This document shows, piece after piece, positions 3,000-48,115 of a stretch of 64,000 bases of DNA (the stretch's first letter is position 1; each line of letters starts with the position of its first letter). The notes under the pieces are model-generated. The model was not told the DNA's origin. It did no database searches and was given only the letters and a program-made list of their open reading frames with translations. Made by a program: the position numbers and the translations under genes. Source of the stretch: Vicugna vicugna (lineage: Eukaryota); assembly GCA_013265495.1 (NCBI GenBank), contig MU057809.1, positions 981,062 to 1,045,061 on the forward strand, read 5' to 3'.

Positions 3000-4010
3000 C
3001 AGTGGCTGTGAATGTAAAATGTAAGAAACAAAGCTCTTTGAAAAAACACAGCAGAGCATTTTTCTGATCTATGTAACCAAAGATTTTTTTAAGACACAAA
3101 AAGAGGTAACAGCATGAGACAAATTTGATAAATAAGATCCAAAATTGAGAACTTCTATTACTCAAAAGACAGTGATGAGAACACTGGAAGTAAGCCACAT
3201 ACGGAGAGAAGGTGTTTGCTATGTACACACGTACACACAGAGACCATATAAAAAACTCCCGCAGACCAGCAGGTGTGTGACGCAACCACCCAAGAGGGAA
3301 ACGGGCAGAGGGCTTGACGACGCACATGCCAGACAGATGACGTCCCAACGGCCAGTAAATGTCCAGACAGGCGCTGAGCCGCACTGTCACCGGGGGAACA
3401 GGGGAGGGGGACACACGAAGGAAGCGCTAGCCCTGCCCCCAGGACGCGTCACGTACCTGAAAGCACCAAGCGCGAGTGAGCCCGGGGGCGGCCAGATGTC
3501 GGGTCAGCGCCACCGGGGGCCTGGGGACACGCCCCGCACACGCACACACACGGGGTCTGACGGCCCAGCGGCCCCGCTCCTCAGTCTGACACGAGCACCA
3601 GAGACAGGCGGGGACGGCCAGGGCGGCGCGGCCCACGAGCACCCCGACCGGAGACCCCCACCCCGAATGCCCACCAGCCGCAGGGGGAGTTCAGAGAACG
3701 ATGGTACAGCCACCAACCGCAACACCGCACAGCAGTGACAGCGAGCCAGTGACGACCACATGCGCGTGAGCAGAGGACAGCGTGTCTCTTCTGGACCGTT
3801 CGGCACACACGAGCTCACGGCCCAGTCATGTCGGATCAAAACAGGCAAGAGTGGTCTGGGGCTGGCGGCCAGGCCGGTGACTCCCAGGACCGGGGGAGGG
3901 AACTGGAGGGCGGCGGGGGGGCTTCAGGGGCTGGTGATCTTCTGCTTCGTGATTTGGGAGCCGGTTTCACTGCTCACGGATAGTTTGTGTTTTTCTTATA
4001 CGTGCTTCAC
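3000..4010 (+). mobile_element. Old LINE-1 ORF2 end and 3'UTR fragment
   Basis: The A-rich block caaaattgagaacttctattactcaaaagacagtgatgaga and the downstream gggggcttcaggggctggtgatcttctg...tgatttgggagccggtttcac are typical of L1ME 3' ends. Confidence 0.7.
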
Positions 4011-7000
4011 GTCAACAAAAAGTGACGTAAATGAAGATAATGTTTCAAATTTAAAAGTCATTAAGTAGCAAAAGTTATTGTAAAATATCTTTTGAAAGCT
4101 TTTGCTTGAAGGAGAAGCACACACTCCTCCATCCAGCCTTCCTTTAATTTCAAAGCAGAAAGGCAGCAGGCCCTGCAGGGAGGGTGCCCAGCGCTCCCAG
4201 ACACACGCAGGGCTTCATCTTCTGGGGACCCGGGAGCAGCACCGGCTGTCGCTAAAAAAGAAGACAATGAACAGGAGGGAGACTGAGGGAGAGCAGCAAG
4301 CCTGGTGGGGCGGGGAGGCAGGTCCCCAGACAGCCGCCTCCACGACCCGCCCGCTGCCGGCACCCAGCACCGGGCACGCACGCTGAGCACAGGCTGGGTG
4401 GGCGCTGCCAGGACTCTGCAAAGGACTCCAGAGCAGGGGCCAGGAGGAAGAGCCAGGCTGGAGCCACAGACAGGCGGCAGCAGGGGGACAGTGGTGCCCA
4501 CAGCACGTTCAGTGGCAGCAGAAGGCAGGGACCGGGTGGCTGGAGAAAGAGGGGGGCGGGGTCCTCCCCAGGGGAGACCGTGGTTCTGTACGGAGCGGGG
4601 AGCGCACGGCGGTGGGAAGGGTCTGAGAGATGTGTCAGAGCCGGGCGGAGAAGACAGGGTCCAATTCCTTCGGACCTGCAGGCATCCGATGTGTCACGCT
4701 GTCTCGGAGGTCACAAAAAAGTAAGCAAGCACCACAGCCAGGCTGGCATGCGGACAAAGCGGGCAGGCTGCAGACCCTGCGCAAAGGAAAGGTGTCGTCC
4801 AGACCCGGACGGGAGGCCCCCAGGGACCCCTCCAAGAGAACTCCAATCAGAAGGCCGTCCCAGTTGGCCAAAACAAGGACTCCCAGAAAGAAAGGGGCGT
4901 GACCCCCCGTGCGATCAGGTACAAAGCAGTCCCTCTTGAGCACACGGGCTGTGAGCGTTCCCTCCCAGTGCCATCACCTCCAGACAACACGTCAAACCTG
5001 GCTCCAAGACTCACACAGCCCCACGTCTGCAGTGATCTTGCATTCTGGCTCTCGTGATCTGCAGGGCCCATGTCCCTCCCATGGGGCCTCCCCACTGGGT
5101 TCCGCATTTTGCACTTTCCTGCTGCCCTCCTAGGATGTCACTGGCACACCCACCTCCCACTCCACTTGCTGTGTGCAGGGGCACCGGGGACACAGATCCG
5201 AAGAGGGCGCCCTGGTTGTAGATGTCCCCGAAGACAGCTTCACGCGCTGCAGGACGGCAGGGAAGCCCTAGCAGACAGCAGAGACCAGGACCAGGGTCAC
5301 GCATGCCCAGACTCAGCTGGAGAAGGGCAGGTGCCCTAAGAACTTCTTGGAGACGTTCCAGGCAGACCAGTCAGCTCAGCCCCCTCCAGGGGGCACAGGG
5401 ATGGGCACAAGGGGCGGGCTTGCTCAGCTGCGGCCCGAACGGGGGCTGAGTGGGCAGAGCTGCGCAAAGCGCACTGGTCAGAATGCTGGCTCCAAGCCCG
5501 TCCCCAGCCCTGATGGGCCTGTGGCTCCGGGCGAGGGGCCGTACAGGAGCTTCGACCCAGACGACTTCAGAGGGGCGTGGCCGGGTCTGGGTGGCAAGAA
5601 GCCCCGGGCCTGGGGCATCGGTCAGGCTCTGCACACGGGAGTCCCGCTGGTCCACCCACCAAGGAGGCTCAGCCCAGCGAAGAACAGGAGAGCTCAGGCC
5701 CCCTAAACTGTGTGCAAACGAGGCTGGGGACAGGGAAGAGGCCATGCCAGGGCCACAGAGAAAGGAGACCCAGACCCTGGGGCTGCCCAGCAGGAGGGGC
5801 CGCACCCGGCAGCATGTGGCCCCACACGGAGCGTGGAGGCCGAGTCCCGCGGCAGCTCTCCACCATGTGTCACGGTCACGTGTGTGCACATGCACGTGCA
5901 CACACGCGTTTGTCCTGGCCGGCTGACGGCTCAGGAGAGTGAGCTACACTGAAGAGGCCCACCCGCGAAAGAACCCCAAACTGTGCATCGCGGCGGAGCT
6001 CCGGACGCCGGGAATACAGGAGGAGGAGCCCAGCTACCGGGGGCGCTCCCTGCGACCAAACCGATGGCGCAGAAAGCCACGCTTCTCACCAACGCCACGC
6101 GGGCAGTGAGGACGGGACAGGGGCCAGGCCGGCCGCCAGGTGAAGGGAGAGGAGACCTGAGACCAAACACGTCAGGGGTGTTGCCCTCAAGGGGGTCCCG
6201 GCAGGAAGGTTCCGCAGGCACGAAGCCAGTGCCAGGGTGACTCTCCCACCCTGGACCGAGGCGCCCACCTGCCCCTGCGCTGGGAACGCTGGCCGAGCTC
6301 TCGCCCACTCGGCTCCGAACCTGGTGAGCCCCGGGGCGGCTGCTCTGCCTCGTCAGCATTCGGCAGCACGCCGCTCCTCTCTCTCTCGTTTGCCTTCCTT
6401 TGTGCTACAGAGATAAGTAACGTTTCTAATCTGCTATCGCCCAGCTGCAAACGCTTGAGCATTTTTTTTATTTAAAAAGTAAAATCTCATTTTAGATTTG
6501 CAAGAGAGACAGCTACCCACACACGTACTAACAACCTGCCACCCAGAGGCCAGGCGGGCCCTGCGGACAGAAGGGCACACGTCACGGGGGAGCCACCAAA
6601 GCCCCAGACACCTGGATGAGGAGACCCACGTCTCCAAAATTCCTCTAGACACACGCAGAGGCCTCCCACCCACTGTCACCTCCTGCTGACAGTCTGGAGG
6701 CATGAGCTACCAGTTCTGCGGGGAACCACCTCTGGGAGGCCACGCAGGACCCCCCAAAAACTGGCTGCTCCCTGCAAGGACCCCCCCATGGGCCGACCAG
6801 CCATGAGAAGGAAGAGCACGGGGCCCTGGGGTGCAGCAGAGTCAGCGAGGGGCCAGGGCTGAGCGCACACACCCTACTGCCTGAGGGCCACAGCCTCTCT
6901 GCAGGCAGGGGCTCTCACACTTCACACGACGCCTAGGCCTGTCTGGGGACAGCATTCGGCCATCACCCCCCAACAGGTGGGGATGAGAGTAATCAAGCAG

Positions 7001-7339
7001 AGCAAGGGGTGCCCAGAGCACCTTCCAACGACAGCAGCCGGCAGGGGACAGGGCAGAGTGACAACGCCCACTGCACCCTGGACTGGCACCTGCGCGCTTG
7101 TCTGGTCCTGCAGCCCCAGGAGAGGAAGCAGCAGCCTCTGGGCCCAGCGTCAGGGCAGGGGTCAGAGCTAAAAGGCGGTCCCGCCAGGAGCTTCTGAAGA
7201 TGAAAACCCTGCCTCCTGGTGGGTGGTGACAGCGGCACCTGGACTTCACAAGGCCCGAGGGTCCTGCCGGGACAACCCAGCCAAGGGCGCGGCCCTGCAG
7301 TGCCCGGCCCCTCCCCACCCACTGGCACGGCGGGAGCCG

Positions 7340-7360
7340 GGCGCTGTCCGTGGTGCTGGG
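7340..7360 (-). promoter_or_regulatory. REST/NRSF binding site (RE1/NRSE)
   Basis: The minus strand reads CCCAGCACCACGGACAGCGCC against the consensus TTCAGCACCACGGACAGCGCC. That is 19/21, with both half-sites and the canonical 2-nt spacer intact. Confidence 0.8.
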
Positions 7361-7477
7361 CCTGGCTCACAGCAGGGAGTCCTTCCACACTGCGGCCCTG
7401 ACAGCACACAGGAAGCAGGGCGAGCCTGAGACACTCAGACAAGTCTGCCTGAGCCTCGGTCGGCCTGCATATCTTAC

Positions 7478-7532
7478 CTCATCTTGGCAACTTGTTCTGG
7501 TTTTGTCAACATCTTAGAAAGTTATTTTGACC
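7478..7532 (-). other. Candidate cryptic or alternative MAD1L1 exon (55 nt)
   Basis: The minus strand reads cctttcatgtcctgtcctccaagcccctccag|GGTCAAAATAACTTTCTAAGATGTTGACAAAACCAGAACAAGTTGCCAAGATGAG|gtaaga. It has a pyrimidine tract, an AG acceptor and a strong donor. The ATG at 7512 runs MLTKPEQVAKM-S and ends in phase 2. No transcript evidence is available. Confidence 0.4.
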
Positions 7533-10500
7533 CTGGAGGGGCTTGGAGGACAGGACATGAAAGGTCTCCGCTCACAGCAAACGCAGCCCTAGCACTCACC
7601 CTCACGCTCACCTTCATTTCCCAGACACACCTGAGAGCTGGCGCCCAGGTTAAAATTTTATCATTTCTGTACCAGCTCAGTTATCAGCAGACTCTCATTT
7701 GCACGTGTCAGAGGAAGAGAGAGTCACCTAATTAACCACTTTCCCATCAACCAAAGGAAGGGGCTGTATGCCCATTTCTCCTCCACTCCAGCTTCCCACC
7801 CGCTGAAACCCCCTCCCCTTTAATCAGAGCAGACTCCTCCTCCTCTGTCATCGGGGGCTGGAAAAACTCACGCCAATTACAGGGATTTTAAACAGGCCAA
7901 CGTACACACCGTCCTTCTCGCTGTAAGACCTGCCACTGAGGGGAGACCCCGACCACGGAGCGGGCTCTGCTCCACCCTGAAGTCCCCACCCAGGAGGCTG
8001 TTCAGACTGGAAGGAACAGATCCTCTCTGCCGCCAACACAGCAACGTGAACAGATGTCACCGCGCTCACCGGCTGGGCCGCGCTCTCTGCGGCCCCGAGC
8101 CAGCACAGGGCCCGACACACACTCCGAACCACATGGAAGATGGAAGGGGCGCGAGCTCCGGGCAGACGGCAGGGCTGGAGCCAGGAGGCCTCGCTCGCCC
8201 AGAGCCTGACCTTGCCGGTGAGCCTCTGACCCCGCGTGCACCATGGAAATGAGTCTACCCACCAGCAGAGGCCGCGGAGACGGCACAGGAGGGAGCCAAG
8301 TCCTGGCATGGTCACCACACGGTGGGTTCTCAGCGGACACCAAGCCTTGCAGCCGCAGTCACCACCAGCACGGCACACACTTCAGCCCAGACGTGACCCC
8401 AGGTCTACCACCCAAAGATGTGCCACCCCGCTCCTCCAGAGGTGGGAGGTCAGTGTCTGGAACAGGCTCTGCAGATGGGCACTGCCCCCTCTCCAGCTCC
8501 AGCCCCACAACCCGAAGGAGAGACACCAGCCCCCTGGAGTCAGCTCTGCAGAGCCCTGTCACACAGGCTCGCCCCAGCTCCTTGTCCCCTCTGCCTGGAT
8601 GTCTCCACAAGTGGCCACTCCTACTTGTGCTCAGGTCTCGACCTCAGGGTCCCCCGATTCCTCGGGGGGGGCAGTCGCTGACCACCACCCCCACCCGACC
8701 AGGGCCCTTACAGCCACGCAGTCCTCACCTCTGCCGCCTCCGTGTGTGGTCCTGCAGGAGACACACGCTCGGCGAGGCCACGGGCCACGTCATGTCTGTC
8801 CCTGAGCAGGCAGCATCCAGTGCATGCAGCTCAGTGAACACGCTCCCATTTGAGCGAAAAAAATGGAGAAGGAAACGGGCGGAGTAGGGGGTAAGTAAAG
8901 CATCCCTGAGAGGCCGCCGGCACTGGACACGCTGTGCGGAGTGGGGCCCCGGGAATCAGATGACGCTGCTGGACCGGCGCACGGTGGGCCCGGACGGCCC
9001 AGACAGAGCACAGAGGCTCCAGCTCTCTCTCAAGGGCAGAACACCCAGACGAGGCCCCAGAGGGGGCTGCGCTGGGAAGAAAAGGGAGTGGGGGGCCCAC
9101 TCCCCACCAGGGCACCCCCATAGCGCACGGCTGAGCCGCAGAGCCAGCATCCCTCCACATCCCCAGGGAGGCTGACAGTCACAGGCAGCGCCCTGGGCCC
9201 TGGAAACACGGTGGGGAGCGCACAGCCACGGGAGGAGGTGGCCCCGGAGCCCAGCAGAGAATTAAGTCTGCAGCTGGTGTCTGGACACCACTGACGAAGG
9301 GAAGTGTGTTCCTGAGCTGCCTGGAGCTAAGCGTCCCCAGTCACAGGGATGATGGGCGCTCTCCAGCCCAGCCGCCCAGCACGGCGGAAGCCACGCAGGC
9401 CGGCTCCCCGGGGGGAATGCCCTGAGCCCGCCTGGTCCCTCTGACACAGAGCCAGCACCGACAACTCCAGGACACACCAGAGCCACGGGGTGGCGCACGC
9501 ACCACCACACTCTCCCGGGAGAGGAAGACTGGAGTGTCAGTAGCAACGTGCATTTATGGACAAAGCTCCCCACACAGCAGCTCTCTGGGCTACATGAGTC
9601 CCCTCCTCACTGAATTCTTAACCTGAAAACCAACCACCTTACACTGAGGCGCCTCATTCTGACGGCAATGCCTGTTCTGTGGAAGCCGGCGCCACAACGT
9701 CCCACTGCGATTTCCCCAGCCCAGGGAGCTCAGCGTGCGCCAGGCGCGTAGGCCATCCCAGTCCCCACTCTGGGGCCTCGAGCCACTGTCCCCCCTTCCC
9801 CTGTGGTGCGAACAGCAAGACTGTGACCCTCAAGCCCAGCAGCCGAGGAGTCATAGAGCCCAACAGGGTACTCTGCCTGGGGTGCAGGGCAAGGCAGCTC
9901 TCCCTTCTGAACACTGCAACACGAGGATCACACAGGTCTGTCACAGGCCACCCAAGGACGGAGTCCTGCCTCTCTCCATGAGCCGGACGCCTGGTTTTCC
10001 AAAAGCCGTCCAGTGGTGAGAGGCTGGCTCTGCCACACCTGACTCTCACCACGACACAGGCATGGCCCACCTGCGGCACGTCGTGAGCAAATGGAGAAAG
10101 ACGGTACCTGCTGCCCAGGAGCTGACCCTCCACGGAGGTCAGTTACAACCAGGTGGACAGGGGCCACATGCCATAAAGGGGCTGAGGCCGAGGGCTGGCC
10201 GCATGGCGTGGTTACAGAGGGCCTCGACCAGGCTCGGAGAACGGAGAGGGTCGTGGTGGGCTCCGGGAGCGGCCTGAGAGAGGCTCCAGAACCACAGGCC
10301 GGCAGGGGCCCACAGGTCCAAGGGGCACTCAGATTCTAGAGAACACAGGCCCTGTGCCACGGCAGCGATGGCAGGGGAGCGACCGAGTCTGTAGGCTGCC
10401 CTCCAGAGAAGGGCCGGGGGACAGGAGCAGCAGCGACCCAGCGCAGGTTTAGATGCATCTGGGGGCGGACAGGGTGGAGGCAGAATAGCGCCGTGCAGAG

Positions 10501-14676: not shown

Positions 14677-14812
14677 NNNNNNNNNNNNNNNNNNNNNNNN
14701 NNNNNNNNNNNNNNNNNNNNNNNNNNNNNNNNNNNNNNNNNNNNNNNNNNNNNNNNNNNNNNNNNNNNNNNNNNNNNNNNNNNNNNNNNNNNNNNNNNNN
14801 NNNNNNNNNNNN
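14677..14812. other. Assembly gap (136 N)
   Basis: Run of N. Confidence 1.
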
Positions 14813-16559: not shown

Positions 16560-17430
16560 AAGGCGTGAACACACCTCCCACCCAGGTACTGGCTCTCCAT
16601 CAACAGGAACCCGAGCGTCCTGGAAAAAGGGTCGATGCCGTGAAAGGCGCAGAGAAAATCCAAGTTCAGAGCATTGTGCGACGCTGGGAAGGTAGGAAAC
16701 ACTCCAAACAAGACAGTGGGAGTCAGAAGAGCACAAGAGCCAACTGCAAAGAGCTCCCACAGGTCAGAGGTCAAAGGCCAGAGGTCAGACCATCTGAGTA
16801 GCTCGGGGCTGCAGAGCGCTGAGCTCAATGAGACGCTGTCCGCAGTTCACGCCGGCATTAAACGACCAACGGAGGAAACACGCGGGGAGAAGGGACGAGT
16901 CTCCCCCTGAGAAGCCCAGCCCCGAACGCACCAGACACAAGGGAAACGGACGACCCCTGTGCCCTATGGAGGCGGCGGCCGCAGGCGAGGCCCCCCAACG
17001 AGCCCGAGAGCGAGCGCCCTGCAGGCCGGGAGGGAACGGGCTGTCGGCAAGGTCCTGGCACGTCCCCAGGGACACTTCCTGACCAGAGGGGAGCGCCCGG
17101 CCTCGCAGCAGAGAAACAAGCAATCGAGGCCGGCAGCACGGGAAACAGACGGTGCCAACGCCACGCACCCCGCACGACGCGCAGAGGAGGCACAGCGTCG
17201 CTTCTGCGGTCTCACACCTCAGCCTGACCAGACAGAAAGTCACCCCCCAACACCGCGGCGTTCTGCAGCCCTGCCACCCACCCCTTAGCCCAGCGCTCCT
17301 GCGCGTCTCGGCAGAGGAGAGCGGCGGGCGCAGGATGAGCTCAGAGACGGTCCGCGGATGCTGTGCGCTGGCTGCGGCGGCCGGCACCCTGCCCAGCCGG
17401 CCTGAGCCCTGGCCGGCCTCCGCCCATGGC
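16560..17430 (+). mobile_element. L1MC-like 3'UTR remnant, strongly GC-shifted
   Basis: aacaggaacccgagcgtcctggaaaaa, gagccaactgcaaagagctcccac, ggggagaagggacgagtctcc and cagcgtcgcttctgcggt match successive L1MC 3'UTR motifs (from memory). Confidence 0.6.
16761..16787 (+). promoter_or_regulatory. Four nuclear-receptor half-sites in DR1 spacing
   Basis: AGGTCA-G-AGGTCA-A-AGGCCA-G-AGGTCA. Confidence 0.6.
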
Positions 17431-18161
17431 TCCTTCCTGGCGCCACACCCCAGAGCTGGGTGAGGGGTGCAGCCTGAACGAAATCAGTGAGTAGGTGGCT
17501 CCGTTTGAAACGAACGCTGAAGGCTGAACAGGACCCAGCGTGATTCATCCACATGCTCCCTGAAGCACCTAAGACGCGCCCCTCAAGGGCAGGTGTGCAA
17601 CGAACGGTTCCTAAACCAGCGAGGAGGAGCCCCGCCCTCCTTCCTCCTGGCAGGCAGGATGACTCAGCAGAGCGGGCGTGGGCGAGCTCGGGGACACGGT
17701 CAGGGGCACCCCAGTGGAGGTGACAGGAGGGGTGCGGAGGAGGTGCAGGGAGGACGGGGCATGGATGAGCCAACTCGGGGGCCTGCGGACACACGGGCAC
17801 AGGGAAAGCAGGCCAGGCCACGTGACGCACTGGTGAGGGTGGCTGCGCCAGCTGGATGTCAGAGGAGACCCAGGCAAAGGTGGGACAGGTCAGCAGATTT
17901 CAGGATTTCACGGTGGGGGGGACGGGGGAAGGAGTCCAGATATTTCAGAATGAGGGAAGGGCCCTAATCAAGGAGATACCGTCACTGCCATGCATGGAGG
18001 TGGCCGGCCGGGGCTCCATCTGGAGCCTGGGCTCCTGACTACAGGCGTGCCTCTGGGAGAGAGGAAGCTGCGGGCCGCGAACAAGTGCTCGGACTAAGAA
18101 GGCTTCCGCCAGGAAGCAGCAGCTAAGGCGCACGAGGAGCACCCCTGGGGGGAGCATCCGG

Positions 18162-18175: not shown

Positions 18176-21049
18176 GAGGAGGGGACGAGCACATGGCTCT
18201 GACCCTGGCCACACAGCGTTCCTGGGGCCGGGCCAGGGGGCCCCCGAGTCTGCCCCCAGTCCTGCTTAGTCACCAGAGCTGCTCCTTCCAGACAAGCTGG
18301 GCACGACCGGCCCAGGGGGCAGAGGGTCTGCACAGGGGGACTCTTGCCTCAACACAGCTTCCCACACAGCACAGGGAACACTCGCCCTCCAGAGCCGCAA
18401 CACAGCAGGCAGGCCGCTGCCCCTGCCAGGCGACGGTGCGGGGACAGCACGTGCGAGGGCTCTTAGCACGATGTGCTTGTTTACCAACAGGGCGCCCTGA
18501 CCCTTGGGACTAAGTCATTCATTTCCCTGCACAAGAACAGCAGGACAGCCAGCATCCGGGGCCCCTGGGCCCCCCGAGTCCCCTCCAAACACACTTAGTA
18601 ACCACTGCCCCCAGAGGGGCAGCTCCAAGGAGCCAGAAGACCACACCCCCTGACCCCAGGGGCACCGAGAGGCTCTCGGACCTCTGTCCACCTGGGCTCC
18701 CGACACCCGCATCAAAAAGCCTGCCATTCCTGAACACCTGGCCTCAGGCCCGCCGCCCCGCCTGGGGGACAGAGCCACTCGACTCTCCAGGGCCCTTCCC
18801 ACAAGCTGGCCTGCACGCAGCAGCTCAAGGCGCTGGTCTGACCTGCCGCAGCGAAGGCCATCCTCCCGTCTCCCTCCTGACAAGCACAGCCTCTTCCTGG
18901 GACTGTGAGGCTGTCAGCCTCAAACAAGCACGTACAGGACACACGGGCCAGGGCGTGCAGGTGCGTGCACATGCGAGCGCACAGGGGTGTACGCTGAGCG
19001 ACCCGAGCACGGAGGAATGACCTGGGGCCGGGGACCGGAGGCGCAGCTGAGCGGCCCGAGCACGGTGGGAGGCGCACATCTCAGCCTTTTCTGCTCTTTT
19101 CTCCCAGACCAGCCGTGCAGAAGCCGGCTGACGACAGGCCCTCAAGGTCTAGGCTTCCCAGAACACGGGACTCGGAGCAGACACAGGAGGAGCTCCCCCT
19201 CAGCCCTGCTCGACGATGGTTCTGGAGGTGCATCCGTCCCCTGCTCTGCCCCGCCTGTCTCTCGTGTCCCCAGAGGAGCCCTGGGAGGCAGGCTCTACCG
19301 ACGACCTTCCCCTGGAGGCAGTGCAGTCACAGGCTGTGTTTCCTTCCAAAGCAATGTCGGACGGAGGGTAAAGGACGGCCCAGATGGCGCGTCTGGCGGT
19401 CCCCCCGCCGTGTGGGTCGCTGCTTATTTACAGCAGAGGAAGCGGCTCTTTCACACACTGGTCCCCTTCCCTCTGCCTTCTGTGCAGACCGGGCTCAAAG
19501 CCGTTTGTCAGGACACCAGACTCCTTGTGCGCTCGCTTCAGCAACCAGCCCCTGGGAGACGCCGTCAGCCCTGCCCACCCGGGTCGGCAAGGAAGAGCCA
19601 CAATCTCGAGCTGTGCACCGAGCCCCGCCCGGCAGCGACTGCAGGCAAGGTCCGCCCAGCAGTGCAAGGCCTGCGCTGGCATGTCTGTCTGCCGACACAC
19701 TCCTGTCCCCTCCACTCTCTCCCGATTTGAAGAATCAAAACAAGGGACCCAAACAAGGGCCCTCCCTCCCCAGTTCTCTGAAGTGAGAAGGTTCCGGGCC
19801 AGAGGCTGCCCCTTGGACCGTCGGGGCCCACCTCCCACTCTTCCAGACAGAAGCCCACCTGGGCACTTGGGGCAAGGTCGCCACAGCACATGCTTATTTT
19901 AATGGGACAAAGCTGGAAGATGCTACTCCGGTGGCTCTGAGACACAACTCCGGTGATTCAGGGCTGCCCCGGCCTGCAGGGAGTTCAGGCCCTCTGACCT
20001 GGTGGGAGGGCAGCAAGCAAAGCCGGGGCCCGTACCTGGAGTCCGCTGCCGGGGTGGCCAGTGGAAGGACAAGGAGGGCAGGTGTGGGAGGTGGTCGGAG
20101 CTTAGCACGGGCGCTATGCGGGGAGGAGAGCTCCAAGCCAGCTGCTCTGGCTCTCCGTGTCAGCGCCCACAGCTCTACGCTCCCCCTCCGCCCGACCACG
20201 GCCGCGGCTCCCTCTGGAATGGCGCGCCCCCAGGTGCTGCCCTCAGTGCCCCTCAGAGGTCACCATCAACATCGCAGGCCAAGGAGTCACAGCTCACTCC
20301 TCATCTCAACGTCTGATGCCAGCCTGGGCCTCCCCACTCCTGCTGGGCCTCCCTCCCGGAAGGCCACAGAGGCACCTCCAATTCCCAAACAGCCACTTTA
20401 CGCCTGGGGCCTGTGGGCAATCCCGTCCCTCCTCCCAAGTTCTCTGGATTAAAAGCTCAAGAGTTAGACACCCGACAGCCTCCCCTGCTCTCCGCCCTCT
20501 GCGTCCGGGGGCTGCCACAGCCTGGCCCCACCACCGGACATCCCGCACGACTTCCTGGAAGCCAGCACCCCTCTCCCACTGGTTTCCCACTGGCCCACTC
20601 CCACCCAACAGCTCGTCCTGTGTGTTAAGCCAAGTAACACCTGCATGAAGTAGAGCTCTGGTCACATTACCCCCCCACGACTTCCCCCAGGCTGAAATAA
20701 GGCCACACCCCCGGGGTCAGCCCTCCCCAGCCACTACTGTGAGGCCCGGGACACCCAGAGGGGAGGAGGTGCCTGCAGTGCGGGCACGGCTCCCAGACGC
20801 TGAGCCAAAGGCCCCCCACGCGAGCAGGAGCACATCCCCAGCCCTGGCCGGGCCTTCAGGGCCGTTTATGAGAGCCGTTCCCAGAAGCCGCCAGACACCA
20901 GGAGCTGTGTCTTCCATCGCTTTGTTTCCCCAACAACACAAAACCAAGGCTTTTTTAAAACATAAAACATTGTAATTATTCTGGCGCATCATTCCAAGAG
21001 AGATTTGTACACAGGAGCACATGCCAGGAAAGGCGAGCTGGGGCGACCA

Positions 21050-21900
21050 AGACGAGAACACGGCCCAAAGCCCCGTGGCACAGAGCTTCACACGGGAGAG
21101 GAGCGCGGGCCTCAGAGACGCGGCCCTCCCCCTGCCCGGGGCCGAGCGCGGACACGGAGCGCCCTCCGGCGTGCCCGGCGCCAGACCGTGCTGAGACGGC
21201 AGCCCGGCCAGGGCAGGGCGGCCTCCGCCGTGGGGCGACGTCTGGGGGCACCGCAGGGTGGATCCCTGCCAGGACGCGCTCACAGAGACGCCGCTGCACA
21301 ACCGGGCACCGAGGCGGGTGCGAACACCTGCCGCTGGGGCGTCACAGGGGGACCGGACACGCGGACGCAGGGACCACGGGGCTCCTGCGGGGAGCGTCCA
21401 AACCAGGCCAAGTGGACACTGCGGATGGCAGACTCCCTGCGGGCAGCGACCACAGGGCAGAACCAGACCACACAGCTCTAGGCCTTTCCAGCTCTGAGGT
21501 GGCACGGCGAGTTTGTGCCCCACAAACGGACAGCACCTCCGTTCTCACGGGAAGCGTAGGCACTGAGGACAGCTGTGAGGACGCGCCCCCGTGAGCACCA
21601 GAACTGCAGAGTTAGGTGCACGCGCTCCTCCCCGGAGGAGCGCGGCGGGGACGCCGGGAGACCGAGCGGAGCACACACCGCTCAGCCTGACAGAGCCGCG
21701 GCGGTCCTGACGCAGAGGCCGCAGGCACCCCCGCCGAGCAGGCCGCACACTAGCAGACCTTCAGGGCGAGCGTCTCCCCGTGCAACGTGGATGGTGCGGC
21801 CGGTCGGGGCAGCCCCCGAAGCACGGCCCGCGGCAGGCACCAGAGCCCCGAGGGTCTGCGTGATGCTCCGCAGGTCGGGGGCCTGATCACTATTTCTGTC
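21050..21900. other. CpG-dense intronic segment (CpG-island-like), partly resembling a GC-shifted L1 3' remnant
   Basis: CG density is very high by inspection. The order of motifs at 21270-21480 resembles the L1 3' consensus. Confidence 0.5.
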
Positions 21901-22163
21901 CTGCCTCCCTTGCTGGCCTGTGAGCTCCGTGAAGCCAGGGATCCTCCTGTGCTATCCGCAGCGTCAAGGCAACTGCCAGGCACTGGCCAGTGCCACAGGG
22001 ACCCACAGAGCCATGCAGACAGACGGACGGACGGAGTAGAGGCGGCAGAGACAGGGCAGGGAGAGTCACCTACAGATGAAAACTGAGGGAAAAGTCCGGA
22101 AAACAAAACCCCCAGCCGTCAAAAGTGATGGCCCTGGTGGGAGAGAGGCTGCCGCCAGCTCAC

Positions 22164-22175: not shown

Positions 22176-25100
22176 CAAGGCGGTGCGATGAGCCATCGCC
22201 ACCGTTCTAATTTTTAATTTAAGTAATTAAATGAGAAGTAGAGAGAAAATGCAAGAACATCTACGGCCACCCAACAGCCTTGGTTCAGGCAGAACGAGGC
22301 GGGAGCCTCAGAGGGGCTGGTCCCCCGTGACTGCAGGGGGTGTCGTGTCGCTCCCGCTCCCAGCCGGCAGGATGAGGCCCAAGTTCAGGCCCACACTCGG
22401 TGCTGGTCTCAGGCTGCCCCACCCACGGGAGAGGAGCCCCCAGGAGCAGACGCCCGGGGCACGAGGGGACCTCCAGGGGCTGAGACTATTCTAAATCCTG
22501 ACAGGGCGCAGGGCGCACAGGTGCACACCTAGGTGAAAAATCGGAGCACCCGTGTACAACCTCCCTGTCTCTTCTACTTAAAAAAGTTCAAGGAATATTT
22601 CCAGCTATTTGAAAACTGCCACTTACAGTCTAAGCAGTGTCCGACTCACGCCGCTCCCATGAGCTGAGAGCTAACAGGTGGCTGTGGCTGGCCACCGACC
22701 CGTGATGGCGAGGCTGGAGGCTGACCCTCAGCCCTCTCTCGGATGGCGGCTAACCGTGCTGTCGTCTCCAGCAAGGCTGCCAGACACGACTCGAGGCCTC
22801 ACGTGTGCTCTGTGGGGGACTCCTGATGGAACAGTTCCCCTCGCAGAGGCCATCTGAGCTGTGCCCGACTGTCGTTTTCTCGAAGAGTCTTAATGGGTTT
22901 TGGTTTCCGAGAGCCCCTTCCTGGTGAGCAGACTGCTCTGTGAGAGCTGACCTGGCAAGGTCCCGGGGCGCGCACGGCCCCTAACCTCCCACCACCGACA
23001 CCCCCGGCCCTGGGAGGGTCCAGGGTCGCGCCCCACACAGTAGCTGGCACCTGGGACAGCTGAGTTTTTTGGCAGAGCCGTCTGGTGAGATGAGCAGCGC
23101 TCCTGGCACCAGGAGGTGGTGGAGCCAGCTGGTGACAAAGGCCGCTCAGTTACAGAAGTGTGAGATAGTCTGGGAGCAGAGGACTGGAAAGAAGATATGC
23201 AGAGTGGAATAATCACTTGGCTTCACAAAAACCAAATTGATTTGGAAACAATTTGGGAAATGCTTCAGCCGCCACTGAAGCGCCCGGCAGGAGAGGAGCT
23301 AGGCCAGTTCTTTGGCCCAAACCAGAGAATTTACTGAGAATTGAAGTCACCCCAGTACCTTCTCCTATCTGATGAATATGATTAAAAATGCATTTCATCT
23401 GGCAAGTGTGTGTCAGGAGCCTGACAGGCCTTGGTTATAATTACCCAGCAGGGCTGGGAAGCATCCTGGTCCCCAGGTGCCAGTCAGAGAGTTGAAGGCT
23501 GCTGGCCACCGCTCGGACGGTTCAGGGCAGCCCCCAGCGCTCTCACTCTGCCCTGCTGTCTTGATCGATGCTCCTGGGCCAGCCGTGTCCTCCAGGGCAG
23601 CGGGGCGTGTGGGGACCCTGTCCCCTCCAGACTTTGCTGTCCCCACGGGGCCTTTTCCTCGCCAGCGCCACAGGCCTCCATCACCGAGAGCCACGGTGAC
23701 TGGCCTGTTGTCCAGGCAGCTGCCCAGAGGGGGTGGGCCTGTCAGGGTGCCGTGGTGGGCACAAGTGTTTTCTCTCGTGGGCTGCGGACCCTTGTGGGTG
23801 AGGTCGCAGGGCTCCTCTCCCCAGCTGCACCCCGTCCTCCCACGGTCTGGCCCCCTCAGCTGCCCCCCCTCCCCCATCGCGGTGGTGCTGCTCCTGAACA
23901 CCTCTGTCCACAGCCCGCTGCCCCCGCTCTGTGCTCCCACCCCAGCCCCACCGCCCTTCTCTCTCCTCCTGGAGCTGCCTGCGCCCATGTCCACTGCAGC
24001 GGGAAGAGTCTGTCACAGGCAGCTGGTGCCACCCCGTCTTCTGGGCTTGCTCGCAGGATGAAGCCCACAGGACTCCAGGCCTCCAGGCCGGCTCCCTGTC
24101 GGTCCTGCCAGCTGTCCTTTCCTGGCCCCCAGCCTCTCTGTGTGAATTTCTGTGTCCCCGGTAACTGAACGAGGCGCCCCCGGCCATGCTCCCAGAGCCC
24201 CTTCTGTGTGTTCTGCAGCCCCTTCCAAAACCCCCCATCGCCCGTGTCAGTCTCCCACCACGTCGTACACACGGACAGGGCAGGGGTGCGTTCTCCTCGG
24301 GGTTCCGACCGGGGACCTGGGCCCCACTCGCAGCAGCACAGGGCGAGCTCCTGCCACAGCGGCTGTCAGCCCGTGTCCTGCCCGAATGGACGGCTCCTGG
24401 TGGCACGAGCTATGGCCGCCCCAAGGGAGGGAGCGTCAGTGGGTGGGGTGGGGCCCCGAAGCAGGGGTCTGGACTTCCTGATCCTGGCCCCGTGCCCTTT
24501 CCTGAAACGCGGTCCCGGGCCTGCCTTTGTGGAGCCTGCGTCGTTACTCAAGTGAACTGCTTTCTTACAGAGCCTCCTTCTTCGTTCACCGTTCGTTTGA
24601 CACACGGCAATAGCTCATCAGCTGATCTGCCCGGTGGCGTGAGGTTGGGGTGATTTATTTCGAGGTCCGTGGTTTCTAATGAAGCCCCAACCGGAGGCGG
24701 CCCAAATAGCTGCTGCCCCGCCCGGCCCCACACACCACCCGCACGGGGCGGTGATGCAGCCAGTGCTGCCACGAGACGGCGTCACCACCTCCGTGCAGCA
24801 GTGAGTGACTTGCTAAACCTGTGTGTTTGAAACCGTGAGTGGCAGTAGCAGGCGGTCCTTGGGCGCCGTCCCGGGCCTCCTCACACCTGGGTGCTCAGAG
24901 CAGAGCTGTGCCTGGCATCCGTTCACTGCCACCCCTCGTCCCGCCCCTCACCCCTCCTGACAGCCCTGTGTGGGACCGGGCGCGCCTGCGTGAGCGCTCA
25001 GCGGGGTGAGGGTCCACCCTGCCCTGTGTCTCTGCTGCTTCTCCCATGTGCCCGTGTCTGACTGCCTGGGCCTTCATTTATTTCAAATTCAAAAAACTTG

Positions 25101-27199: not shown

Positions 27200-28685
27200 G
27201 GGCTGGGGTGGCAGGGCCGCCTGCCTCGTGTTACATGCTGGTGGCGGACATTCCAGGAGTGCTCATCCACAGGAGTCTTCCTGGAGGCTGACTTCTTGAT
27301 CGGATCATCAGCACCAAGACCCAGCCCCAGCCACCAGCCTGTGGGGAAGCTGCAGGCCAAACAGCACACGGTGGGAGCACAGCCCCGCCCACCAGCAGGC
27401 CTCCGAGCCACAGAGGCCTCTCGGCACGGCGGGCTCTGCCAGCCAGCGGTCCAGGACCAAGCTCCTCCTGGCAGTGGGCAGGCTCCGGCTCCTCCCGCCA
27501 GGAAGCCTGCATGAGCCTCTAGCCCAGCCTCACCCACCAGGGGCAGATGCCAGAAACAAGAAAACAATGGGGGGGTGGGGGCAGGTAGAGCTCAGTGGCA
27601 GAGCCCACGCCTGTAGGCGTGACATTCCGGGTTCAGTCCCCAGTGCCTCCATTTAAAAAAAGGAAATACATTTTAAAAACCTAATTACCTCCCCACCCAA
27701 AATAAAACGAACAAGTGAAAAATCATTTAAAAAAAAGAAAACAACAATCCCAAAGCCCGTGAAAGGAGCCCACAAGCACGCAGAAGGACGGAGACGCGAG
27801 GCGGCCGAGGACTATCGCCAGGGCAAGGCGCAAGAGAACACCCCAGAAGAAGAGACAGGTGACGAGAGGACAGGCAGCTTCTGAGCAAGAGTTTCCAGTA
27901 ACGACGGCGAAGACTCAGGACGTCCGGAGAACTCAGGACGAGCACAGGCGCCGGAGCGAAGATTTTAGCAACAGCCGGCAAACATAAAGAACACCCAGAG
28001 CGGAAGGACACGATCGCTGGAGTGAACGACACACTAGAAGGAACCGAGAATGGGCCAAACGAGGCGGAAGAACGGATCAGTGAGCTAGAAGACAGATCAG
28101 CGGAAATCACTACTGCAGAAAGAAAAAAGAAGAGAGAATGAAAAGAGATGAGCATAGTTCTAGAGGACTCTGGGACAACACGAAGCGCACTAAGATTCGC
28201 ATTACAGGGTCCCAGGAAGAGGAGAGAGAGGGAGGACCTGAGAAAACTTTTGGAGAGATGATCACTGAGAAATTCCCCAACCTGGGAAAGGGAACAGTCA
28301 CCCAAGTCCTGGAAGCACAGAGAGGACCACACAGGATCAGCCCACAGGGGGACACGCTGAGGCACACAGTCGTCAAATTGACAACAATTAAGGACAAGGG
28401 GAAAATATTAAAATTAGCAAGACAAAAGCAACACATAACATACAAAGGAGCTCCCATGAGGTCATCAGCTGATTTTTCAGCAGAAACTCTGCAGGCCAGA
28501 AGGGAGCGGCTGGACATATTTAAAGTGATGACAGGGGGAAACTTACAACCAAGAACGCTGTCCAGCAAGGCTCTCTCTTGTTCAGAGCTGATGGAGAAAT
28601 CAAAAGCTTCGCAGACAAGCAAAAGCTAAAAGAATTCAGCACCACCAAACCAGCCTTACAACAAATGTTAAAGGGCCTTCTCTAG
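27200..28685 (+). mobile_element. LINE-1 (laurasiatherian/cetartiodactyl type) 5'UTR plus decayed ORF1, interrupted by a SINE
   Basis: 5'UTR motifs (gcaccaagacc, ccaggaagcctgca, gcctcacccaccaggggcagatgccagaaacaag) are followed by ORF1p sequence: LWDNTKRTKIRITG...EKFPNLGK...LKLARQKQHITYKG...ADFSAETLQARRE. After a frameshift it continues GEIKSFADKQKLKEFSTTKPALQQMLKGLL with a stop at 28683-28685. Confidence 0.93.
27569..27734 (+). mobile_element. Camelid tRNA-derived SINE (Vic-1-like) with target-site duplication
   Basis: G-rich head, A-box-like GAGCTCAGTGG, B-box GGGTTCAGTCCC, the CCTAATTACCTCCCC tail motif and an A-rich end. The TSD AAGAAAACAA is at 27558-27567 and 27735-27744. Confidence 0.9.
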
Positions 28686-28737
28686 TCAAAAACTGCAAGA
28701 AAAGAGAACGAAAAGAAGAAAGGAAAAAAAAACAAAA

Positions 28738-29280
28738 GACTGCTTTGGCTGTTCAGGGTCTTCTGTGGCTCCTTATAAATTCCGGGTTGTTTGTTCTAGT
28801 TCTGTGAGGAGTGTCGCAAGTACTTTGACGGGGGTTGCGTTGCATCTGTGGGTTGCTTTGGGCAGCGTGGCCATTGTGATAGTGTTGATTCTTCCAATCC
28901 AAGAGCACAAGAAATCTTTCCATTTCTTTGTGTCATTTTGGTTTTTGGAGTATAGGTAACCTCCTTGGTTAAGTTTATTGGTAGGTATTTTGATGTTCTG
29001 ATGTAATGGAAATGTTTATGCTGGTTATAAAATTCTGGTTTTTGAAGTGAAAAAAAAGTGAAAGAAGGGCCACAAATGGCAAAATATCCTCCTTTCTTAT
29101 GGGTGAGTTGTATTCCATTGTGCACGCGCGTGCGCGCGTGTGTATACACATATACACATATACGCTGCATCTTCATTAACAGCTCCACAATTAATGTGCA
29201 CCCAGGACGCTTCCATATCTTAGCAGTTACAAACAATGTTGCCATTAATAGCAGGGTGTATGCATCTTTTTGAATTATTT
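28738..29280 (-). mobile_element. Two antisense LINE-1 ORF2 fragments in non-collinear order
   Basis: The minus-strand translation contains ATLFVTAKIWKRPGC (ORF2 C-terminus, AALFTIAKTWKQPKC-like), then KYLPINLTKEV (end of the RT domain, KYLGINLTKEV-like). Confidence 0.85.
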
Positions 29281-29419
29281 CTTATTTTGTGGCTGGCTTT
29301 ATTCCTTTGATAACTATGCAATTTTAAAAAGCTAAAGCCCTAAACGCTCTTAGAAACAAAGAATAGTATGTACATGTAAATTTAAATATACACGTGCAGT
29401 AAAAAAAAAAAGAAAGAAA

Positions 29420-29920
29420 TCAGCTATCAAGCCATGAGAGACCAGGAAGAAACTCAGAAGGCATATTACTAAGTGAAAGAAGCCCGTCTGAAAAGGCTAC
29501 AAGCTGCACGATTCCAACCAAGCGACATTCTGGGAAAGGCACAGCTACAGAGACAGCAAAAAGATCGTGGTTCCCAGGCGCTTGGGGAGAGGGAGGGATG
29601 AGCAGATGGGGCACAGGGGAGTTTCGGGGCAGTGGAACTACTCTGTATGACACTACAGCGGTGGCCACACGTCATTATGCACTTGTCAAAGCCTGCACAA
29701 TGCACAAGATCCGGAGCGAGCCCTCGTGTGAACTGTGGACTCTGGTCGATGATAATGTGCCCATGTGGGCTCATCGACTGTACCAGACAGGCCACACTGA
29801 CGAGGGAGGCTGAGGGGAGGGGAGTGTGCATGTGTGGGTGGGGAGGGCTCTGTGCGAACTCTGTATTTCCTTCTCAATTCTGCTGTGAATCTCAAACTGC
29901 TCTAAAAAAATTAAGCCAAT
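29420..29920 (+). mobile_element. L1MB-like 3'UTR with A-rich end
   Basis: gcatattactaagtgaaagaagcc, gacattctgggaaaggca, ctctgtatgacactaca and aactctgtatttccttctcaattctgctgtgaatctcaaactgctctaaaaaaa. Confidence 0.9.
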
Positions 29921-32900
29921 TAATAAAAGAAATCTCCAAAATCTGTCTGATTAACCAGAATCAAACAGACCACATTCTGTGACCACAGTAATTAAAACTG
30001 AAATCAACAATACAAAGAAATTTTTTTAAAACTCAGGAAAAAAAGGGAGTCCTCCACAAAGCACACGTGAGGCCTCTCAGGTCATGTCTGACGGCCTCAC
30101 TGGAGACCACAGAACAGTCAACCTCCATCCGAGAGAGGGCTGAGGGTCAGCCTCCAGCTTTGGCCACCACGGGTCGCTGGCCAGCAGGAGCCCCAGTGCA
30201 GTCACTCTAGTCCACACTCTGGGCCACCAGCCGGGCTGCCTGCAGGCGTCAAAGCCCCTGTGTCCCCTGAACTCCAGAAGCAGCGAGGCGGCTGCTGGGA
30301 TCAGTCCCCAGCCAGCTCCTCCTGGGCCCCGGGAGCAGGAGGACTGCCCAGAACCGCCCAGAAGGAGGTGACTGCTTCGCCCTTGCTCTGTTGAAACCCT
30401 CTCCCTCCCAACCTGATCTCCATCAGACCTCCGTCCACGGCCGGTGGGGTACGTTTTCTGAGGGTAGCAAGGAGGGGAACCAGAAAATGCCAGCGGGCAG
30501 GGTGGCACAGGCACCCTCTCATGGCCTCACCTCTGAAAAGGGTGATGTTCAGAGGGCCCAGGATCACGGGGGAGGGACCAGCCGGCCGGCACAGAGGCGA
30601 CACGGCCACCCCACCCTCCAGCGTCGGGGAGGCAGAGAGGCGGCCCTGCAGGGGTGGAGTTGGTGTGTGGCGAGCAGCACTTTGATGGTCTTCCTAGGCC
30701 TCGAGCTGGGGGACTCAGCCCGACAGCTGGAAAGAGTAGGGGCAGAGAAGGGCGGGACACGCACGGCCTGAGAGGAGCAGTGGGCCTGCCACAGAGCAGG
30801 GCCGTCTGACCGTGGGATCCCGGAACGTGCTTCCACAGGTGTGCAAAGGTCGGGCTTGTGCCTGCAGGACGCATATGCCCTGCTTCCAAAGGGCTCCGTG
30901 AGGCGCCCCTGGACGCCCACTCCTGTCTGGCAACACCCTTCCCCAGCCACTAGCCTCCGCTGCCCTCCGATGACAAGGCTGCTGAGGAGAACCTGTTTCT
31001 CAAGGACAGGTTAACAAAACCCCAGGACATGAAACCCGAGGTGCCTCCTCTCTCTCACCCAAGGAACCCTGAGGGGCTTCCTCAACCCGACACCCCCGGA
31101 GCCCCCCGGTCTGCGCGTGGACGGCCAGGCAGACACACTCAGCCCTGGTAAGAGGAAGCAGACAGCAGACACGCACTGGGGCCAGTGGCCACGGTCGGAA
31201 AAGCAAACAGTTTCGCACACATAGACCCAGCAGCCCCCAGAGAGCCTGCAGGGGCGGCAGGCGCTCACACTGCAGCCCCAGCCCAGCGACAGCCCCCGCC
31301 GGGGTCCTGTCCACAGCCACCACTGTCGGAGGGACAGAGAGGCTGGCCGCGGGGCCAGCAGGGGCTCACAGTGTATCTGCATCTCCAGCCCAACCTCCCA
31401 GAGATGAATGAAGAGAACCTGTCACAGGGAACCCTGAGCCCGGGCTGTCTGGCAGTGGCCCCTCCGTCCCAGAGCAGCTTCCCCTGTCAGCACACGAGCC
31501 TCCTGGGGGCACGCCAGGCTCGCTGCCAGGGCCGGGCTTGGCCAGTCCTGGCCAGGCTCACCTCCCATGCAGCTCAGCCCCACTGGGCACGCCCCGATAG
31601 CATGCCCCCGGCCAGCGATCGGACACACCTGCCCTCTCCCGACCCCGACTCCTGCGGGGGCTCTGAGCCTCCTCTGGGAGCAGGGGTCTGAGTACTGGAC
31701 TAGAGCACAGCAACATGGGGCAGACGGGGCCGGCCCAGCTCTGCGTGCGTCGGGACCCCAGTCCCAGCTGGGACCCCAAGATGCAGCCTCCAACTCTGCC
31801 TGCAAAGCCTAGGTCTTCCCAGACAGGGCGTGGACACGGCGAGGTGCGAGAGCAGCCAGGACGGGGAAAACCAAACACCTGCGACAGCGACAGGCCGGGG
31901 CAAGCCTGCCGCGGCCTCCGGCCACTGCGAGGGGCGCACGCGCAGTAAGTGCAGCGCAGCACCGTGGGGCCGCGCCCACCTGCAAACTCGTTTCTGACGG
32001 TATTTCATACTCGATGATAAATCACACGGAGTCAATGACTAAAACAGCCACGGGCACTTAGCCAGGCCAGGAGACCGCCCCAGCGCCTATCTGGGGCAGC
32101 TCTCCCAGATGCTACCCCAGGCCCCGGGCCGGCCACTGCGTGCTGCCCTCGCAGCCCACCGAGAAGCGGGCCCAGGACCTGCCGCTGCGCCGTGCAGACC
32201 GCACCCAGGGGCTTCCCTCCCGGGCGCCACCGTGTCCTGGGCTGGGGGCGTGCGCCTTGCCAAGATACATCAAGAAGCGGGCATCTCCCAGCCGCAGCTC
32301 CAGCCTCCCGTCCGGCCTCACACAGGAGTGGACCCCGCCAAGGCCGTCCACCGTCAGGCAGGCAACTGAGTGTGCAGAGCTGAGACACTGGAGCCCAAGC
32401 AAGGGGTCCGAGTCTCTGCACGTGAACGGAACGTGCCAGGGAGGAGCCTGGGCATCCCATGGCCACGGTGCACAGGCGGGACCCGGAGTGGGCCGCGTCT
32501 CACCTCTCCGCCGTGGCCCCTGCAGCCAGCCAGCGCTCACGGCAACAGCTCCTCCGGGGCCTGCGAGCCCTGGTCGGGCATTTCAGGAAGGCACCGAGAC
32601 AGCCTCGACTCAAACGCTTAAAAGCAGAAGGACAAGTGTTCTGCGGGCTGGCAAGGCATAATCCCCGCATTTCTCTGGCTTTTATGAGAGGCTAAGTTAA
32701 AAATGGCTTATACGTAATAAAATCTGTTACATTTATGGCAAGAAAATATGGAAAGACAATAAAATTAGCAGAGCACAGGAATGAGAGAATACTAAACACC
32801 CTTGGCTCTCCGACAGGAGCAGAGAAGGAGCAGTCAGGATTGTCAAATTGGAAGGAATTTAAAAGGATTTAAAATTCAAAGTTCCACTTCTCCTCCCCTG

Positions 32901-33529
32901 CCGAGTGCTGTCCCAGGGGACGCTACACAGCAGGAGGCGGCTCCGCTGGTGTCTCTGGGCTCAGGCTCCCAGACAGCGGCCTGGAACACGCCCTCATGCA
33001 CCGGCCAGACCCTGGGTGTGGTCACCGCCGGGGGCTCAGGTGTGCCCCTGCCCCACACCGCACACCCTGGGGGCTTCCTCTAGTGCAGGACGCCAACTCC
33101 TCCCCTTCCCACCTCAGCACCCACCCCCCCAACCCCGGACCCCAGCGCTGATGTCACACGGGCCACGAGGTGCAAGAGAACTTGACAGCTGTCCTCACCT
33201 CAGGCCTCTCTGGTCAAGCGCATCCTCTCTGCTAAGACAGTAACACGACGCAGTCCCTGAAGTCTTGCGGCCCCCACCACACAGGCCCGAGGGGCCTGAC
33301 CACGCACACCTGCAGCCTCAGCTGGAATGGGCGCCCAGCGTGAGCTGGGTGCTGGCAAGGGGGGCGCCCCCGAGAACACAGAGCCGGAGCCCACACGCCC
33401 GACGCAGCGTGGCCGCCCTCGAGCTCTGGCTCGCCCGGAAAACCAGACAGGCCTGGGGCAAGGGACAAATCCACACGTGTTGTCCCAAGACCCTGACTGC
33501 TGGGAGGCCCGTCTCACTTGCTCTGTTTG

Positions 33530-34400
33530 TTTTGTTTTACATTAACAGACATCACTGTCAGAGCAGTTTCAGGTTCACAGGAAGCTGAGTGCCCGTACGA
33601 CTCCCACCCAGGCCCCCCCTCAGCCCCCGGACGTCTGTTACGACGTGGGAACTGACAGAGACGTGGCAGCACGAGCTCAGCGCACAGCTTTCACCTCGCG
33701 TGGCATCAGGGAGACGCAGTTACGGCAGCAGCGAGATACACCCCCTCCGTCAGAACGGGCGGAACAGCGACACTGGCAGCAGCCGACAGCGGCAAGAACA
33801 CGGGCAACAGCAACCTCGCTCCCGGCGCCACGGCACGCCTGCAGGCCCGGGGGCGGCAGCCCCACGCCTGCGCTCCTTCAGCGCTGCGCGGCTCCTCTGA
33901 GCCTCTTGCTCTCAAACAAACTGGAGAGTCAACTCGCCGCTATCCACAAGATGAAACACCGTGCCAGGATTCTGACCGAGACCGCACTGCACCCACAGAC
34001 CACGTCCGGACGAGCTGGCGTGGCGACAGCACCGCGTCTTCCTATCCATGAACACGGAACACCTCTGCACTCACCCAGATCTCTGACGGCTTGCATCACA
34101 GCTCCACAGCTGTCACGCAGATCTCGTACGCAACTTTCCAGATTTACACTTAAGCATCTCCATTTGTTTGCTTCGGTACTAATGTAGGTGGTGTGCTTTA
34201 ACTTCCGACTGCGAGTGTTCGCTGCTGGTGACGCAGCACACCTGACGTGCGCCCTACAATATTGCTGCGTACCGGCTCTGCGAGTTTCCTGGCTGATTCT
34301 CTGGGATCTTCTGCACGGACGGTCACGTCATCCTCCTTCCCGCAGTATGAGGTTAAGCTGGACACCCTTGCCTTGATCCTAAACTTCACAGGAAAGAATC
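33530..34400 (-). mobile_element. Old LINE-1 fragments (3' end and ORF2), antisense, GC-shifted
   Basis: agagcagtttcaggttcacagg is an L1M 3' end. cttcctatccatgaacacgg and gattctctgggatcttctgcacggacggtcacgtcatc match antisense ORF2. Confidence 0.7.
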
Positions 34401-43684: not shown

Positions 43685-43790
43685 CTGGAGACAGCAGACC
43701 AGGATTTAGACCCTATCTCTACAGCTTCCTGGCTGCTAACGGGGGCTCAGCTGTCTGTGCTGTGAAACAGGGCAGTGGCACCTCCTGTAG
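43685..43790 (+). mobile_element. MIR remnant
   Basis: cagaccaggatttagaccct...cttcctggctg...ctcagctgtctgtgctgtgaaacaggg follows the MIR core. Confidence 0.5.
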
Positions 43791-48028: not shown

Positions 48029-48115
48029 CTGCTGGTGATGGAGCTGTTCCTGTCTTTCAGGGCAAGCTCGCGCTGCTGCAGCTCCACGATGAACCTGGAA
48101 AGGTCCTCCGGGGTC
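48029..48115 (-). CDS. MAD1L1: MAD1L1 internal coding exon (87 nt, phase 2/2; coiled-coil region, about residues 329-358 in human numbering)
   Basis: The minus strand reads cccttggtcccgcag|G ACC CCG GAG GAC CTT TCC AGG TTC ATC GTG GAG CTG CAG CAG CGC GAG CTT GCC CTG AAA GAC AGG AAC AGC TCC ATC ACC AGC AG|gtaggt, giving [28 protein letters not shown]. This matches human MAD1 [28 protein letters not shown] as recalled. Splice sites are canonical AG/GT and there is a CTGAC branch-like motif upstream. Confidence 0.97.

Follow-up and report, generated by a model that had tools for sequence, protein, structure and literature searches.

The window, the whole 64,000-nucleotide stretch of vicuña DNA analyzed here, carries a coding exon of MAD1L1 on its minus strand and, tens of kilobases farther along the intron that follows this exon, a close match to the RE1/NRSE motif of the repressor REST. 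MAD1L1 is a housekeeping gene of the mitotic checkpoint that governs cell division.

A MAD1L1 exon and the intron that follows it

The host gene was located through short peptide motifs of MAD1, and the exon found in this way was then checked against Pfam.

48029..48115, minus strand: genuine MAD1L1 coding exon of 87 nt, recognized by the Pfam family MAD (PF05557), which fixes the host gene and its strand

This exon, read from 48115 to 48029, is bounded by a cag/G acceptor and a CAG/gtaggt donor, and its translation of 28 residues matches PF05557 with an E value of 1.1e-5 over profile positions 277-304. No later MAD1 exon was found with short peptide motifs between 48029 and the window start, and a composition search for the exons of the MAD1 coiled coil was abandoned, as it yielded L1 remnants only. 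Throughout the window the plus strand holds more A than T and more C than G, a skew that fits transcription with the minus strand as the sense strand. Loci associated with psychiatric traits include MAD1L1 (tables of PMC10556398).

The window is GC rich (about 60% GC, with a CpG observed/expected [o/e] ratio of 0.52), and positions 14677-14812 are a run of 136 N, either an assembly gap or a masked stretch. An AT-rich block on the plus strand at about 27900-30000 (GC fraction, 0.44) contains peptide remnants resembling L1 ORF1 and ORF2, such as KDTIAGVNDTLEGTENGPNEAEERISELED, and probably derives from an L1 element that inserted into the MAD1L1 intron long ago. The segments 22713-22795 and 30076-30158 form an inverted pair of 83 nt, 84% complementary and 7.3 kb apart, and are probably two oppositely oriented copies of a short interspersed repeat. 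Four intronic stretches resemble CpG islands (20751-22000, 3251-4000, 16751-17750, and 33501-34250), with GC fractions of up to 0.71 and CpG o/e ratios of 0.75 to 0.93; no exon was found in association with them, and either orphan promoters or GC-biased evolution of a GC-rich region could account for them. Two long open frames run antisense to MAD1L1, at 48422-49678(+) (418 amino acids) and 56830-57807(+) (325 amino acids), and are rich in proline, serine, arginine, and histidine. Both were rejected as genes, since a plus strand poor in T leaves few stop codons.

A canonical RE1 on the sense strand

The RE1, its parts, and the features nearest to it are the following.

7340..7360, minus strand: canonical 21-bp RE1/NRSE, CCCAGCACCACGGACAGCGCC, identical to the consensus at 19 of 21 positions and with a perfect degenerate core
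7352..7359, minus strand: left half-site, motif positions 2-9, CCAGCACC against the consensus TCAGCACC, 7 of 8 matching, with position 2 differing
7350..7351, minus strand: spacer AC of 2 bp, the canonical spacing
7340..7349, minus strand: right half-site, motif positions 12-21, GGACAGCGCC, 10 of 10 matching the consensus
7071..7089, plus strand: weak RE1-like sequence that departs from the core twice, at motif positions 4 and 16 (consensus core A)
7225..7400, unstranded: local GC peak (0.72-0.78) with a CpG o/e ratio of about 0.5, the flanks having 0.26-0.44

Positions 7340-7360 of the plus strand are GGCGCTGTCCGTGGTGCTGGG, which gives CCCAGCACCACGGACAGCGCC when the minus strand is read from 7360 to 7340. 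Compared with the canonical RE1, TTCAGCACCACGGACAGCGCC, both mismatches fall at motif positions 1-2, leaving an uninterrupted run of 19 consensus matches over positions 3-21, and the degenerate core CAGCACCNNGGACAGNNNC is matched at 7340..7360(-) with 0 mismatches. The two half-sites share one orientation and lie exactly 2 bp apart, the layout being taken as Mouri et al. 2022 defined it (PMC9903721). When up to three mismatches to the full consensus were allowed, this was the single match in 64 kb, against a shuffle mean of 0.01, and under a first-order Markov model the exact 19-mer is expected 2.7e-6 times per window and 0.09 times in 2.1 Gb of the same composition. The degenerate core with up to two mismatches gave 2 matches against 2.3 expected, and the RE1-like sequence at 7071..7089(+) is consistent with chance.

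An earlier note on this DNA, made from the letters alone, had described a minus-strand RE1 matching at 19 of 21 positions, 19 of them consecutive, and had held so long a match to be improbable by chance. Direct reading of 7340-7360 confirmed the description, and the Markov expectation bore out the improbability. The same note had placed the site deep inside a MAD1L1 intron, and the PF05557 exon at 48115..48029(-) confirms this: the RE1 has the sense (minus) orientation and is 40.7 kb deep in the intron following that exon, a depth that follows from there being no downstream MAD1 exon motif between 48029 and the window start.

Judged by its sequence, the site at 7340..7360(-) is a canonical, textbook-quality RE1. 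We estimate its PSSM score at about 0.95, a value gauged against four scored mouse sites (0.911-0.956) rather than computed; the scored sites in the available part of Dataset S1 of PMC2573930 depart further from the consensus, for example TCCAGCACCCTGGACAGCATC (0.925) and CTCAGCACCTAGGGCAGAGGC (0.911). The validated thresholds for such scores are a PSSM score of ≥0.91, established by electrophoretic mobility shift assay (EMSA) and ChIP (PMC1557810), and a FIMO score for MA0138.2 of at least about 20.9.

The 175-bp GC peak has the RE1 at its edge and also holds a GC/CACCC box, CCCCTCCCCACCC, at about 7308-7320. Retention of CpG was considered as a footprint of long-term occupancy and set aside, the local bump being no higher than the window median o/e; at best it would be a weak circumstantial sign of protection from methylation. 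Neither a CpG island nor any other promoter signature was found at 7.4-8.0 kb. An nhmmer self-search with 7200-7900 returned only the query itself and a repeat search found nothing nearby, although the self-search and the tests of reading frames have little power for ancient repeats. Hidden coding sequence over the RE1 was rejected, as the frames of 149 and 158 amino acids that overlap it have no match to a Pfam family; they gave no LINE protein signal either. Rfam recognized no RNA family in the window. A piece of the MIR 3' end showed no similarity around the RE1 and the exon-like region described below; elsewhere it picked out MIR-like SINE remnants at 42578-42673(+) and 43660-43747(-) (nhmmer E values of 3e-4 and 0.02).

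The exon-like segment upstream of the RE1

A segment with the outline of an exon shares the strand of the RE1 and lies 118 bp upstream.

7478..7532, minus strand: 55-nt exon-like segment with an AG acceptor at 7534-7533 and a GT donor at 7477-7476

The earlier note gave this 118-bp distance correctly. It had further argued that the RE1 needs a target other than the MAD1L1 promoter and that the cryptic exon is the obvious candidate, and here the evidence did not support it. Splice sites were scored with a rough scoring matrix, by which the donor of the segment is strong (10.5 bits, against 10.1 bits for that of the real exon at 48115..48029) and the acceptor mediocre (4.1 bits, with 623 as good on the minus strand). 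Taken together, 36 AG..GT pairs on the minus strand of the window are equally good or better, so that one would fall within a couple of hundred base pairs of any given point with a chance of about 0.2, and the nearness of this pair to the RE1 is unremarkable. Stop codons interrupt all three frames of the segment; joined to the end of the real exon, it would be translated as R-V-K-I-T-F-stop. An ATG at nucleotide 21 opens a frame that ends in the phase of the real upstream exon (2 nt, AG), an agreement that arises by chance one time in three. An origin of the segment from a MIR element was rejected, direct alignment scoring 18 against a shuffle mean of 18.9.

Expression was followed in four RNA runs, all of them non-neural (reproductive-tract and similar metatranscriptomes), whose contigs share about 95% identity with the window and hence come from a related camelid. 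They extend over 4500-10400 with hardly a break, at flat depth and with zero splice joints, a pattern that resembles pre-mRNA or contaminating DNA. In none of the four runs do the contigs have a joint at 7533/7532 or 7478/7477; they cross both borders of the segment unspliced. This coverage argues against constitutive use of the segment, whereas a neuron-only event could escape non-neural runs.

Beside the segment, 7600-7900 is rich in AT and carries TAATTA/AATTA motifs of homeodomain type as well as a CACGTG E-box. Conservation of an AT-rich block at 7450-7900 was considered and rejected: over 7630-7801 the related camelid differs at 9 of 172 positions, against about 4.1-4.5% in the flanks, and divergence that is no lower than in the flanks leaves no constraint visible. 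The region itself is present in this camelid, which is diverged by about 4-5%, and 0.78-0.91 of the sampled words recur in DNA runs from organism A and from organism B, the latter probably closely related. Among metagenome contigs, a search with the exact 19-mer gave 120 loci, none orthologous, the only match being of 34 nt, at the level of the motif and without synteny.

The proposal that the site needs another target also lacks support on general grounds, since RE1s are most often intronic (PMC1557810) and those in introns may regulate distant genes or no gene at all (PMC9903721). With 36 equal pairs in the window, stops in three frames, and no joints in four non-neural RNA runs, we conclude that the RE1 probably does not control the 55-nt exon-like segment.

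Possible REST occupancy and targets of the site

RE1 sites recruit REST with CoREST/Sin3 and silence neuronal transcription units outside neurons. Introns are their most frequent location, and in the human genome 1301 RE1s exceed a PSSM score of 0.91 where 57 are expected by chance (PMC1557810). Canonical RE1s account for 86% of the peaks common to all 16 human cell types studied (PMC4055426), and about 60% of predicted RE1s are occupied in both mouse embryonic stem cells (ESC) and neural stem cells (NSC), those shared having the stronger motifs (PMC2573930). In a reporter assay, strong motifs, with FIMO scores above about 20.9, silence transcription, and activity rises sharply above that value; strong repression was recorded for 31% of ChIP-positive canonical sites, and knockout of intronic RE1s altered distal genes in two of three validated cases (PMC9903721). 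We found no main-text link between MAD1L1 and REST, RE1, or NRSF binding in the searchable literature. MAD1L1 is absent from the available supplements of two papers on the human REST cistrome and of one on REST in glioma (PMC4499139, PMC4055426, and PMC11071216), in those of the RE1 reporter-assay study it appears in expression tables only (PMC9903721), and PMC3320604 has only a polymorphic human RE1 beside ELFN1, at +9.9 kb.

The camelid site shares its architecture, a 21-bp motif of half-site, 2-bp spacer, and half-site, with the canonical RE1/NRSE silencers (JASPAR MA0138; SCN2A, CHRM4, and STMN2). Its setting is different: classical RE1s lie in the promoters, 5' untranslated regions, and first introns of neuronal genes, whereas the camelid site is found in an internal intron of a housekeeping gene, about 40 kb from the intron's start. 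Closer parallels are the distal RE1s in an intron of DLGAP4, which acts on MYL9 and RAB5IF, and in an intron of SLC5A5, which acts on CCDC124 (PMC9903721); these likewise have a strong canonical motif in a host that is not the obvious target, but they are backed by ChIP, reporter assay, and CRISPR, whereas the camelid RE1 is a prediction from sequence.

In mouse, the available parts of Datasets S1 and S4 of PMC2573930 list a predicted RE1 within the introns of Mad1l1 (mus11436, TCCAGCACCCTGGACAGCATC; PSSM score, 0.925), with weak ChIP-chip enrichment in ESC (ratio, 1.19; p = 0.0012). They also place a REST ChIP-PET cluster of size 5 in a Mad1l1 intron at chr5:140276325-140276480, about 194 kb from that motif; clusters of PET5-7 were validated at 75% (PMC2573930). 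The listed mouse site and the camelid RE1 are both intronic in the same gene and have 16 of 21 bases in common, including a nonconsensus C at position 2, but their orthology is unproven. Three of the five differences between them, as listed, fall at the two CpG dinucleotides of the camelid site.

The neuronal gene Elfn1 enters this comparison under what we take to be its old symbol, A930017N06Rik. A strong and clearly REST-enriched mouse RE1 that is 3' proximal to A930017N06Rik, at chr5:140.23 Mb in the Mad1l1 region (TTCAGCACCACGGACAGTGTC; PSSM score, 0.956), has a ChIP-chip ratio of 2.57 in the available part of Dataset S1 (PMC2573930). Together with the human RE1 at +9.9 kb of ELFN1, it indicates that REST has at least one well-supported site in this region beyond the window.

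The reading that we favor, and consider reasonably probable, is that the site is an ordinary, binding-competent RE1 of a MAD1L1 intron, of high affinity to judge by its sequence and probably occupied by REST, with a target that may be only weakly affected. We infer from established REST biology that the REST zinc fingers would bind both half-sites in non-neuronal and progenitor cells, the N terminus bringing SIN3-HDAC and the C terminus CoREST-HDAC/LSD1/G9a. The outcome would be a small patch of deacetylated, repressed chromatin within a transcribed housekeeping gene. A modest output would be most likely, whether slight damping of MAD1L1, silencing of an element close by or far away, or nothing measurable.

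The main rival to an ordinary, occupied RE1, which we regard as rather unlikely, is that the site is able to bind REST yet is functionally neutral and restricted to the lineage, having originated through mutation of GC-rich DNA under biased gene conversion or been brought in by an old repeat such as a LINE2, so that REST would bind it with no selected target. Turnover of RE1s is high: of 14 strong sites belonging to the genes for human calcium-channel subunits, mouse retains only 7, and a LINE2 overlaps or adjoins about 1 in 7 human RE1s (PMC1557810). The low share, 31%, of ChIP-positive canonical sites that are strongly repressive in the reporter assay (PMC9903721) agrees with neutrality, as does the composition of the window (60% GC; CpG o/e, 0.52), which favors a GC- and CpG-rich motif. 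However, only about 0.09 exact copies of the 19-mer are expected in a genome of this composition, and so perfect a core suggests that the site was selected or was copied from a functional one; the absence of a paralogue of 7200-7900 in the window and of a LINE protein signal also tells against a repeat, with the low power that these searches have for ancient repeats. It is improbable, in our judgment, that the RE1 is not bound at all, being a look-alike in closed or nonpermissive intronic chromatin or a decoy like the RE1-like motifs of human ERV class I elements, which fail to bind REST (PMC1557810). Roughly one-third of PSSM-predicted RE1s are unoccupied in mouse stem cells (PMC2573930), but 99.5% of the ERV decoys score below the PSSM cutoff (PMC1557810), whereas the camelid RE1 is perfect at positions 3-21. 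Nor did the searches show a repeat signature near the site, and stronger motifs are those bound across all cell types.

We think it very improbable that REST gates an intragenic neuronal promoter or the 55-nt exon, such that loss of REST would yield an N-terminally truncated MAD1 or a poison-exon isoform. The arrangement invites this reading, in that the segment lies 118 bp upstream on the same strand, its donor is comparable with that of the real exon (10.5 against 10.1 bits), and the frame from the ATG at nucleotide 21 ends in the phase of the exon at 48115..48029, as one in three would by chance; moreover, the RNA runs are reproductive-tract-like, from samples in which REST would be expected to silence such a unit. 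Against it stand the four RNA runs themselves, in which no joints occur and contigs pass both borders unspliced, an acceptor of 4.1 bits with 623 as good, and 36 equal AG..GT pairs that make the proximity a matter of chance at about 0.2. The stops in three frames, the lack of a promoter signature at 7.4-8.0 kb, and an AT-rich block (7630-7801) as divergent as its flanks count in the same direction. Most doubtful of all is a conserved RE1 switch for a neuron-specific internal unit of MAD1L1, in which the spliced 55-nt exon would truncate the protein through a premature stop or the in-phase ATG would start an N-terminally truncated MAD1. If true, such a unit would tie REST to MAD1L1, a locus associated with psychiatric traits.

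An intronic RE1 such as the MAD1L1 site is common in mammals and unsurprising in itself. If REST binds there, as the favored reading of an ordinary, occupied RE1 would have it, the site is one more of the thousand-plus strong mammalian RE1s, placed in a housekeeping rather than a neuronal gene, and would be useful for the annotation of camelid REST targets and for the study of how RE1s are gained and lost. Wider importance would come only with deep conservation, for instance through orthology with the mouse Mad1l1 RE1, or with proof that neurons make a MAD1L1 isoform of their own or that the site has a distal neuronal target.
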